A stretch of 64,000 nucleotides of DNA from Macrostomum lignano (GCA_002269645.1 NIVC01001341.1:62001-126000), one strand, 5' to 3'. Shown: positions 20,101 through 23,100, counted from the first letter of the stretch. Program-made: numbers and translations. Notes: generated by a model not told the origin, from the sequence alone.

Positions 20101-23100
20101 TGAACATGCTGAAATGCTATTTTGTTTTTGTTGTAACTGAGCAGATTGTATTCTTGGCGTCACCCTGTATTGGTGCAGTGGAATGTTGGACCTGTGCCAA
20201 ACTTGCTACCATAGACAAAAGCTCCATTACTATATGTAACCATGTCTTGGAATAAATTCAATGTGTATAAGCCTAAATGGGCTGCAAAAAGCTATAGAGT
20301 GCAGCATGGCTGGTAAGATTCTCTAGCAAGGTCTTGACCAAGTGAACAGTTGAAATTCATGTGTACTTCAACAAACAAATGCACACATTAATGCATGTCT
20401 TCAACACGCACAACTGTTGAAATTTAATTTTCACGTTTAATCTGCTTGCAGCTTGTCTATCGATATATAGCACAATTAGCACGGTATATCCCATTCATTT
20501 TCGTGCAGTACGAAGTCACTTTTTTGATGATTTTTGACGTCTGGTTCCTGGTCCAGCTGCTCTAAAAGAACCCACCTTAGATAACCTTATTGACGACGCG
20601 TCACGCGCACTAAAAAATGTTCGGTAAGGCAACACCCTATGCAAATTATCTGTGCAATTATTTAAATCTGACTGTGCTTTGCAGAGATGCCCTGTCAAAG
20701 ATTCGCCATTACCTACGACTGCTGCCCGCATCCGTTCATAGATCTGCGATATCATATTAAGATCCGCAGGCGGACCCTATACTATGGCTTTAACCTCATC
20801 ATCCCATGCGTGCTCATCTCGTCTATGGCGCTACTCACCTTCATCTTGCCGCCCGATGCTGGCGAGAAAATCTCTTTAGGTGCGTCCGTTTTTATTAGAG
20901 GCATTTTAAGTAGGCGACATTGTCACACAACCGGCGAGAGGCATTACTGCCACCATTCCGCCGACTCCCCTGAGCAGGCACACAAGCGCGCGGATACGTA
21001 CGCAGTCAAACGCACAGGCACACACTCACACAGGAGTGTACAGCGACCCTAACTTTATCTATCGTTAGGCATGTACACTTCACTGTGCCTTGGGGTTCGG
21101 GCCTCAAGCTGAGCGTTAATTTCACGAGCATAGATTCCAATGTAGCCACAAATTAATGTAACTGCACTTGGAATCGAGCCTGGGCCGCTGGCACATCAGA
21201 GCGCCGCTCCAGACAACTGGGTGGGCTTACGTTCCTTTCAGTTTGATGTTTTTCAACGATTGCACCTTGCTAGGGCTATTGAGTGCAATATTTTAAAATT
21301 ATATCTTCGAATACTTTAGAAATTGTGGCTGTTGGCATGACTGTCTGTCTGCCTTGGTTGACTGTCGTATTTTTTGAATGGATTCATCTCCACTATTGCT
21401 TAGATTTATTCTAACAGTCCTACTCTGAAGTCCAATTTAAACTGTTTTTAACCCGATAAAAAATCTATTGGCATCGAGTAATGTAGCAGGTAATTTATAT
21501 TTGTAACAATCGGAATAGAAAGCTTAGTTTAAAGTTGATATTTTTGTCATTTAATCAAACTTATTGTTGCATGAGCACTTTCTGTCGCATGCATTTCTAT
21601 TATCTACCTGCTACGAGTTGTGTCGTAGCTACCTGCTCGTATAAGTTTGGAACTACACTAAAAGAAGTTTACTCGTAGCAAAAGACGTGTGTTTATATCT
21701 AGCTTGTGTCTAACAGGTGTGTAGCTTGTGTCTAACAGGTGTGTGTAGCTTGTGTCTAACAGGTGTGTAGCTTGTGTCTAACAGGTGTGTAGCTTGTGTC
21801 TAACAGGTGTGTGTAGCTTGTGTCTAACAGGTGTGTAGCTTTTGTCTAACAGGTGTGTGTAGCTTGTGTCTAACAGGTGTGTAGCTTCTGTCTAACAGGT
21901 GTGTAGCTTGTGTCTAACAGGTGTGTGTAGCTTGTGTCTAACAGGTGTGTAGCTTTTGTCTAACAGGTGTGTGTAGCTTGTGTCTAACAGGTGTGTAGCT
22001 TGTGTCTAACAGGTGTGTAGCTTGTGTCTAACAGGTGTGTGTAGCTTGTGTCTAACAGGTGTGTGTAAATTCTGTCTAACAGGTGGAGTTTCTATGGTGC
22101 ACACTCTAAACAGATCAACGAATTTGAAGTAAAAATTTTCACAAAAAAACTTACCCAGCACTGCGCACTGTTCTTACCTAAAACTGTAGTAGAACATAAG
22201 CCCATTCATAACTAGCTGTTGTAGCATGGCCTATATAATTTGCTATAATCTATAATTTGCAGTAAAAGTACATTTCAATGACAACTCTAGGAGTGACAAT
22301 AATGTTGTCGTTAACAATGTTTCAACTACTGGTGGCTGACGCAATGCCGCAGACTTCCGAAGCGGTGCCACTTATTGGTGAGCTAACAGTTTTAAAGCAA
22401 GTAAAAACAATTTTGTTTAAATCGTTTGCTGACTTCTCATTTTCAAAATAATTAATATCTTTTAATCATACGTAACAACGTCAATTTTGTTTAACTGTAA
22501 GTTTAACGCGTTTTTTTATATTAATATTTGTTTTATTTAATTTATTTGAAAATCAATTTTGGCAAAACGATCCGGTCATTCCGTGCCTGCCAATCTTACC
22601 AGCCATGCACACTTTTTTAGTTTTTGAAAATAAATTGTTTCTAGCGATAGAACAGTGTAGGTGTGCGCGAAATACGTTGTAAAATTAATGACTTGATAAT
22701 CGTAAATTTTTGTTTAAATGTTGCAAAGCACAAATACAATGCAACGATTTTTTTGTTAATTTTCGATATCCTTTGTTTCTCACCTTCGCTATGGGACAAC
22801 ATTCGAATTGGCGAGCACAGGTGTTACCATCCTGTTGTCCTTGACCGTGTTTCTCATGATGGTGGCCGAGGCCATGCCACCGACTTCGGATGCGGTTCCC
22901 GTTATTGGTGAGACAATGGGAGGGGGCACCGTTTATGCACTATTAATAACCTTTCTTGTCATTTTTGTTTTGAGTTTTATTTCGAATTTGTTTTATTACT
23001 ACTATTGGTTTGGCAATTTAAAGAATGTTTGAAATGAAAAATCACGTGGAATGAAGAGCTGCTTCCATGCAGATTGTTGTTAAATAGTGAATTGCTTCCA

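Follow-up and report, generated by a model that had tools for sequence, protein, structure and literature searches.

The DNA analysed here is a stretch of 64,000 nucleotides (nt) from the flatworm Macrostomum lignano (GCA_002269645.1 NIVC01001341.1:62001-126000), referred to below as the window and numbered from its first letter. On its plus strand, between about 10.8 and 27.4 kb, lies a gene for an alpha7-like nicotinic acetylcholine receptor (nAChR) subunit. The exon encoding most of its second transmembrane helix (M2), which lines the pore, occurs twice in tandem, as exons 8a and 8b, and exon 7 is paired as well (7a and 7b). The exons of the gene were placed by a tblastn comparison of the window with human alpha7, and their boundaries were then refined by eye and by translation (Table 1). 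Every exon junction is AG/GT, and all four combinations of an exon 7 with an exon 8 give an intact single open reading frame (ORF). The predicted product contains the Pfam domains Neur_chan_LBD (E = 1.6e-63) and Neur_chan_memb (E = 1.8e-52), and its top PDB matches are all human alpha7 (7KOO and others, E = 7.6e-130), with M2 aligned without gaps. The Cys-loop (C-x13-C) is encoded in exon 5/6, and the vicinal cysteine pair of loop C (YDCC) is present in both 7a and 7b. The signal-peptide exon was not located. The best database matches are M. lignano proteins. One of them, the UniProt model P0003, is identical to window exons 4, 5/6, 7a, 8b and 9 over 273 of 273 amino acids (aa), confirming that the window is M. 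lignano DNA; its C-terminal 79 residues also match the end of exon 10 (79/79).

The initial annotation, made from the sequence alone, had described two M2 exons of 87 nt and phase 1-1. Both exons match it exactly, translations included, and both are bounded by AG and GT (exon boundaries marked by a slash: ctctag/GAGTGACA...CTTATTG/gtgagc for 8a and gcacag/GTGTTACC...GTTATTG/gtgaga for 8b). The two copies share 20 of 29 residues and 73% of nucleotides over the 84 nt of whole codons. Each peptide finds the other copy in a tblastn search with E = 6.8e-11, so the likeness of the pair is not due to chance. Two facts rule out an assembly artefact or a recent duplication: 27% of nucleotides differ between the copies, and diverged paralogues have the pair as well. 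It had also been remarked that 8a is missing from the ORF track. This is correct and is explained by length, as the ATG-to-stop ORF around 8a has 57 aa and falls below the usual cut-off of 60 aa; 8b sits in an ATG-to-stop ORF of 74 aa.

Prime numbering of M2 was fixed by the ungapped alignment to human alpha7 in 7KOO. Exon 8 spans G4' to residue 32', that is, positions 4' to 20' of M2 and 12 residues from the start of the M2-M3 linker. The two versions differ at nine of the 29 residues: 8', 13', 15', 16', 17', 20', 24', 27' and 31'. The differences listed earlier for M2 itself (8', 13', 15', 16'-17' and 20') are all present; the list was incomplete in omitting those in the linker. In the standard alpha7 register, positions 13', 16' and 20' face the pore, and here they carry M/V, L/M and D/E (8a/8b), respectively. 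Differences at 8' (M/L), 15' (Q/L) and 17' (L/M) lie on the helix-packing side, and the remaining three, 24' (Q/P), 27' (E/D) and 31' (L/V), fall in the M2-M3 gating linker.

A choice between 8a and 8b would give subunits identical but for these nine residues. The glutamate at -1', which forms the charge-selectivity ring, lies in exon 7 and would be unchanged by this choice, and for that reason no switch between cations and anions is expected. Both exon-7 copies contain PPDAGEK, with Glu at -1' and no proline insertion at -2', as in a cation-type filter. The earlier claim that E(-1') is kept in both variants is borne out by the motifs GEKVSFG and GEKISLG, and it is plausible from these residues that both isoforms are cation-selective. 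In nAChRs, including alpha7, desensitisation and apparent affinity change when 13' or 9' is mutated, and the 20' ring and positions 16' and 17' affect conductance and Ca2+ permeability. Position 15' of alpha7 lines an intrasubunit cavity used by positive allosteric modulators, and the M2-M3 linker couples ligand binding to gating. Exchange of the exon would be expected to change the kinetics of gating or desensitisation, conductance and possibly Ca2+ permeability, rather than the selectivity for cations over anions. By swapping most of M2 together with the start of the linker, splicing could allow one gene to supply channels that differ in kinetics and permeation.

Both exon-8 versions are present in at least three groups of M. 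lignano paralogues: A, which is the window gene, B and C. Paralogue B (locus L002; L003 is an identical recent copy) encodes a protein about 60-65% identical to that of the window gene. Its exons 7a, 7b, 8a and 8b are arranged as in the window and have canonical splice sites, and its 8a and 8b, too, are 87-nt exons of phase 1-1 between AG and GTGAG. A comparison of these two genes counts 14 synonymous differences in 8a against 2 that are nonsynonymous (proportions of sites pS 0.64 and pN 0.03), and 19.5 against 2.5 in 8b (pS 0.87 and pN 0.04). In each exon, 26-27 of 28 codons keep their amino acid. Preservation of the protein while silent sites are saturated indicates that 8a and 8b are both real coding exons under strong purifying selection. 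In particular, 8a, whose conservation had been named as one of the points on which the earlier proposal would stand or fall, is conserved across the M. lignano paralogues. A blastn comparison of the introns of the window gene and paralogue B found no similarity; only exons align, and no conserved intronic elements were seen. Exon 7a is also present in paralogues B, C and D. The residues Q15' and M8' occur in paralogues A, B and E and in no others. Paralogue E (L001, NIVC01004712) has just one 7b-type and one 8a-type exon.

In the locus of paralogue E, a tandem array of a 42-nt unit (L001 13752-14260, 11.9 copies) runs directly into the true exon 8 (14242-14328). The unit comprises the 3' splice site with ~20 nt from the start of exon 8 (...TTGCAG/GCGTGATGATCATGCTGTC...). 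It is open and in frame (GVMIMLSRNTVPLA), so that the upstream copies are potential decoy acceptors, whose use would add units of 14 aa.

To place the pair among relatives, the exon-8 peptide was extracted from 120 homologues. Flatworm exons fall into two types, 8a and 8b. The 8b type resembles the canonical spiralian exon of Lineus, Capitella, Tubulanus and Octopus, and also that of Limulus; it shares 26 of 29 residues with exon 8 of Lineus and of Capitella, which is present there in one copy. All Macrostomum 8a-type exons and the single exons of trematodes and a monogenean have in common M13', D20', Q24'(K) and E27'(G), and positions 13', 20', 24' and 27' are conserved in their difference across all flatworm copies. 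Inspection of individual loci gave the same picture. Opisthorchis has one exon 8 of the 8a type, as does the monogenean Cichlidogyrus, in which exon 9 begins 84 nt later; the orthologous loci of Lineus, a nemertean, and Capitella, an annelid, have one exon 8 that is 8b-like. A search of the representative library with P0001 found no further taxa with the 8a and 8b pair. In a whole-protein neighbour-joining (NJ) tree with exons 7 and 8 masked, the Macrostomum paralogues form a clade with 100% bootstrap support, as do Macrostomum and the trematodes together. In an NJ tree of exon 8 alone, whose 29 aa are too short for deep relationships and give it low power, 8a and 8b group together in 0 of 200 bootstraps.

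The one exon 8 of the nemertean and annelid orthologues is 8b-like. The duplication therefore appears to span the flatworms and to have arisen separately from that in insect alpha6. The history we propose would begin with a tandem duplication of exon 8 on the flatworm stem. It would precede the expansion of the Macrostomum paralogues and probably also the separation of Macrostomorpha from Neodermata. Neodermata and paralogue E would afterwards each have lost the canonical 8b on their own.

Protein models were used to ask whether 8a enters transcripts. The GenBank proteins P0009 and P0010 of paralogue B and P0002 of paralogue E run from 7b to the 8a-type exon and on to exon 9, and P0009 and P0010 skip 7a and 8b. 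The GenBank annotation of M. lignano is built from StringTie/TACO assemblies of RNA-seq reads and a de novo transcriptome, not ab initio (Wudarski et al., 2017, PMC5730564). Since these models rest on RNA-seq-based annotation, we take them as transcript-level support for use of the 8a type in the paralogues. The initial annotation had held that its proposal would fail if 8a were never spliced; the GenBank models answer this for the paralogues, and for the window gene we infer use of 8a from its sequence. In that gene, 8a and 8b are most likely spliced as alternatives. The acceptor pyrimidine tracts, with 50% pyrimidines for 8a and 41% for 8b compared with 59-77% for most constitutive exons, fit regulated rather than default use of the two exons. 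Overall, we have high confidence that the locus holds tandem M2 exons that are both kept by selection, are used alternatively and arose by duplication in the flatworm lineage. The earlier observation is thus upheld, and its interpretation was essentially right. The exons with their phases and splice sites, the selection on both and their distribution over paralogues and taxa are established, and one-or-the-other use in the window gene and its functional consequences are inferred.

Several observations weigh against this reading. In the databases the window gene is represented solely by the models P0003 and the near-identical P0124 (both from UniProt), which join 7a to 8b, and searches for its products with the full-length and the C-terminal protein recovered only the P0003 cluster, with no member containing 8a. 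In the exon-8 tree, the 8a-type exons group with those of Neodermata in 34% of bootstraps. We also recognised no mechanism of exclusion in the sequence, whether by frame shift and nonsense-mediated decay, steric hindrance, U2/U12 incompatibility or competing RNA pairings. Exon length is a multiple of three, so that double inclusion or double skipping would stay in frame; at 443 nt, the intron between 8a and 8b exceeds the length at which steric hindrance would act; and each copy is followed by GTGAG, a U2-type donor. T-rich sites downstream of 8a and of 8b are complementary to an A-rich site just before exon 9. As competing pairings these were rejected, since 125-176 of 200 shuffled sequences gave duplex energies at least as good, and the docking/selector candidate has no counterpart in paralogue B. 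The missing mechanism lowers our confidence that use of 8a and 8b is strictly mutually exclusive, and not that it is alternative.

The database models raise the question whether 8a is a silent relic in the window gene, with 8b constitutive and the conservation of 8a reflecting past use or use in other paralogues. P0003 and P0124 agree with this, as does the modest pyrimidine tract of 8a. However, both models look like predictions, as they skip part of exon 10, and the acceptor of 8b is weaker still. The frame of 8a, its AG acceptor and its GTGAG donor are intact, the low ratio of nonsynonymous to synonymous differences from the 8a of paralogue B is a property of the window's own copy, and the paralogues use the 8a type. 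We therefore consider a silent 8a improbable. A short gene-specific query for 8a fragments was uninformative, as its 9 candidates did not include even P0003.

A second question is whether one transcript takes in both 8a and 8b, so that the subunit would have two M2 segments. The UniProt models of paralogues B (P0004 and P0008) and C (P0001 and P0125) concatenate 7a, 7b, 8a and 8b, and the two exon-8 copies together (174 nt) are in frame. However, a fifth membrane helix would invert the topology of M3 and M4, and the layout of four helices is invariant in this family. For the same paralogue B, the RNA-seq-based P0009 and P0010 skip 8b, unlike P0004 and P0008. The alternative exons of insect alpha6, which are described as mutually exclusive (PMC1919356), show this concatenation artefact too. 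Joint inclusion thus appears extremely improbable, and alternative use of 8a and 8b is the reading we retain.

Large tandem arrays occupy the introns on both sides of the exon-8 pair. The upstream array has a unit of 22-23/46 nt containing CTAACAG/GTGTG, in which a branch-point-like motif adjoins an AG/GT, and ends about 200 nt upstream of 8a. The array between 8b and exon 9 consists of 34.5 copies of a 33-nt unit and holds open a long spurious ORF. The equivalent introns of paralogue B contain arrays with unrelated units (L002 5215-5522 and 6709-7426).

The pairing of exon 7 extends beyond Macrostomum. A 7a-like exon (RRRK..., ending ...EKVSFG, EKVTCG or EKLTFG) lies directly upstream of a 7b-like exon in the orthologues of Lineus longissimus and Capitella teleta and in the Owenia model P0017; the pairs were located at L004 77698-77889 and 78679-78873 and at L006 7422-7619 and 7770-7964. 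From this distribution, the exon-7 pair may be older than the exon-8 pair. An NJ tree of exon 7 (61 aa) is unresolving, with a spiralian 7a clade in 21% of bootstraps and all Macrostomum copies together in 21%. The combinations in which the two clusters occur are uneven. The genes with single copies, paralogue E (L001) and that of Cichlidogyrus, kept a 7b-type and an 8a-type exon, and Opisthorchis likewise has only these types. The GenBank models of paralogue B also join 7b to 8a, whereas those of the window gene pair 7a with 8b. These are hints of preferred pairings between the first transmembrane helix (M1) and M2, or of coordinated splicing of the exon-7 and exon-8 clusters. In Opisthorchis viverrini, exon 7 is found twice with identical translation, about 1 kb apart (L005 45619-45804 and 46653-46838); the repeat must be an artefact of the assembly or else a tandem duplication of very recent date.

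Further features of the window are included in Table 1. The intron between exons 5/6 and 7a contains a microsatellite. Downstream of the gene is a GC-rich block (58-61% GC) whose long ORFs encode reverse transcriptase, RNase H and integrase domains; this is a Ty3/gypsy-like long terminal repeat (LTR) retrotransposon, and it separates the receptor gene from a second nAChR-like gene, which runs off the window.

Table 1. Exons of the alpha7-like receptor gene and other features of the window, in window positions
Feature	Position	Strand	Length	Remarks
Exon 2	10838..10985	+	148 nt	N-terminal ligand-binding domain; 5' boundary tentative
Exon 3	14779..14823	+	45 nt, 15 aa	
Exon 4	17028..17137	+	110 nt	identical to P0003
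Exon 5/6	17664..17980	+	317 nt	fused; contains the Cys-loop
Microsatellite	19113..19527			(GAGAG)n, ~82 copies
Exon 7a	19759..19953	+	195 nt	loop C (YDCC), M1 and M2 -1' to 3'; first of the exon-7 pair
Exon 7b	20685..20879	+	195 nt	canonical exon-7 copy
Tandem array	21700..22085			intron upstream of 8a
Exon 8a	22291..22377	+	87 nt	phase 1-1; divergent 'flatworm' type with M13', D20', Q24', E27'
Intron 8a-8b	22378..22820	+	443 nt	U2-type GTGAG donor; weak pyrimidine tract before 8b (41%)
Exon 8b	22821..22907	+	87 nt	phase 1-1; canonical alpha7-like type with V13', E20', D27'
Tandem array	23060..24197			intron between 8b and exon 9
Spurious ORF	23074..24459			held open by the preceding array
A-rich site	24281..24302			just upstream of exon 9
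Exon 9	24323..24432	+	110 nt	M3; common acceptor for 8a or 8b
Exon 10	26834..27448	+	615 nt	cytoplasmic loop, M4 and stop codon
LTR retrotransposon	33951..41030	+		Ty3/gypsy-like
Second nAChR-like gene	59769..62548	+		start of the gene; N-terminal ligand-binding-domain exons at 59769..59888, 61347..61385 and 62441..62548

In the flatworm, selection has kept the two exon versions distinct from a time before the divergence of the paralogues. Trematodes and a monogenean retain only the pore of the divergent 8a type. The M. lignano gene offers this 'parasite-type' pore and the canonical one together for comparison, which may interest work on anthelmintic targets; a method for transgenesis in this free-living species has been reported (PMC5730564). 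Searches of PMC and bioRxiv found no paper on mutually exclusive exons in nicotinic receptors of flatworms or Macrostomum, and a survey of lophotrochozoan nAChRs (PMC6896357) mentions neither flatworms nor alternative exons.

Among known genes, vertebrate CHRNA7 is the nearest structural relative and shares the -1' Glu, the 9' Leu and the acidic ring at 20'. It also has the same exon sizes (45/110/195/87/110). In contrast to the tandem pairs of the flatworm gene, exons 7 and 8 of CHRNA7 are each present once; the flatworm gene also differs in the fusion of exons 5 and 6 and in a 23-aa insert in the ligand-binding domain.

Arthropods provide closer parallels to the pairs themselves. Tandem copies of both exon 8 and exon 7 were found among the homologue matches in alpha7-like genes of Timema, Schistocerca, Nilaparvata, Melanaphis and Amphibalanus, and genes of the Dalpha5/Dalpha7 type (Timema, Schistocerca, Nilaparvata and Amphibalanus; RefSeq and UniProt models) have the same two-cluster architecture. 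One arthropod exon-8 copy carries D20', Q24' and E27', like flatworm 8a. It is conceivable that 8a and 8b belong to a module as old as the protostomes or older, with the arthropod 'ADALPQTSEAIPLL' exon an ortholog of 8a. The equal length of the arthropod exon-8 copies, their accompaniment by exon-7 copies and the place of the arthropod exon beside the flatworm 8a clade in the NJ tree are in keeping with such a module. However, cross-phylum grouping has at most 10% bootstrap support. D20' and E27' recur in many unrelated nAChRs, including ACR-16-like proteins of nematodes, and the signature is for this reason homoplastic. A lone exon 8 is present in the orthologues of Lineus and Capitella, and the order of the exons is opposite: in Macrostomum the divergent copy precedes the other, and in Timema and Melanaphis it is the last one. 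The arthropod exon-7 copies lack the spiralian 7a signature (RRRK...EKVSFG) and group with each other in 52% of bootstraps. We regard an ancient exon-8 module as unlikely. Less likely still is an extended version, in which the exon-7 and exon-8 pairs together form a very old protostome 'pore module' with 8a homologous to the arthropod ADALPQTSEA exon and the clusters spliced coordinately as 7b-8a and 7a-8b. If this were true, the duplication would predate the split of spiralians and ecdysozoans, and whole matched M1-M2 units would be swapped.

The initial annotation had left two origins side by side, a convergent or an ancient duplication of exon 8, and had asked for a phylogeny of the exons. 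In the exon-8 tree 8a never joins 8b, and the low cross-phylum support leaves the deeper grouping unsettled. Single-exon relatives and exon order narrow the choice toward an independent flatworm origin without settling it, and we favour, with reasonable though not strong confidence, convergence of the flatworm pair with the exon cluster of insect alpha6. The resemblance to that cluster (Drosophila Dalpha6 and its orthologues) is close. The homologous exon has the same 87 nt and 29 aa and runs from M2 4' (GVTILLSL...) into the M2-M3 linker. Both systems consist of tandem copies of equal length and phase in an alpha7-like gene, and in both the copies predate the radiation of the host clade; insect exons 8a, 8b and 8c are mutually exclusive and older than the insect orders (Jin et al., 2007, PMC1919356). 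The insect cluster has also been linked to spinosad resistance through mis-splicing (PMC5111602, PMC6393475). There are also differences. Insect alpha6 has two or three copies, and the flatworm gene two. The insect copies vary mainly from 15' to 24' (NLVAESMPTT, NLVAETLPQV and LLVAQVLPQT), whereas the flatworm pair is distinguished by 13' M/V, 20' D/E, 24' and 27'. The second variable cluster is exon 3 (loop D) in insect alpha6 and exon 7 (loop C to M1) in the flatworm. Exclusivity is supported by reverse transcription PCR in insects (PMC1919356) and is presumed in the flatworm. The same solution in a flatworm family would make the M2 exon a recurrent target of tandem duplication. The flatworm pair is a further case, in another phylum and probably of separate origin, of an arrangement already known from alpha7-like nAChR genes, a tandem and very probably alternative exon for M2.

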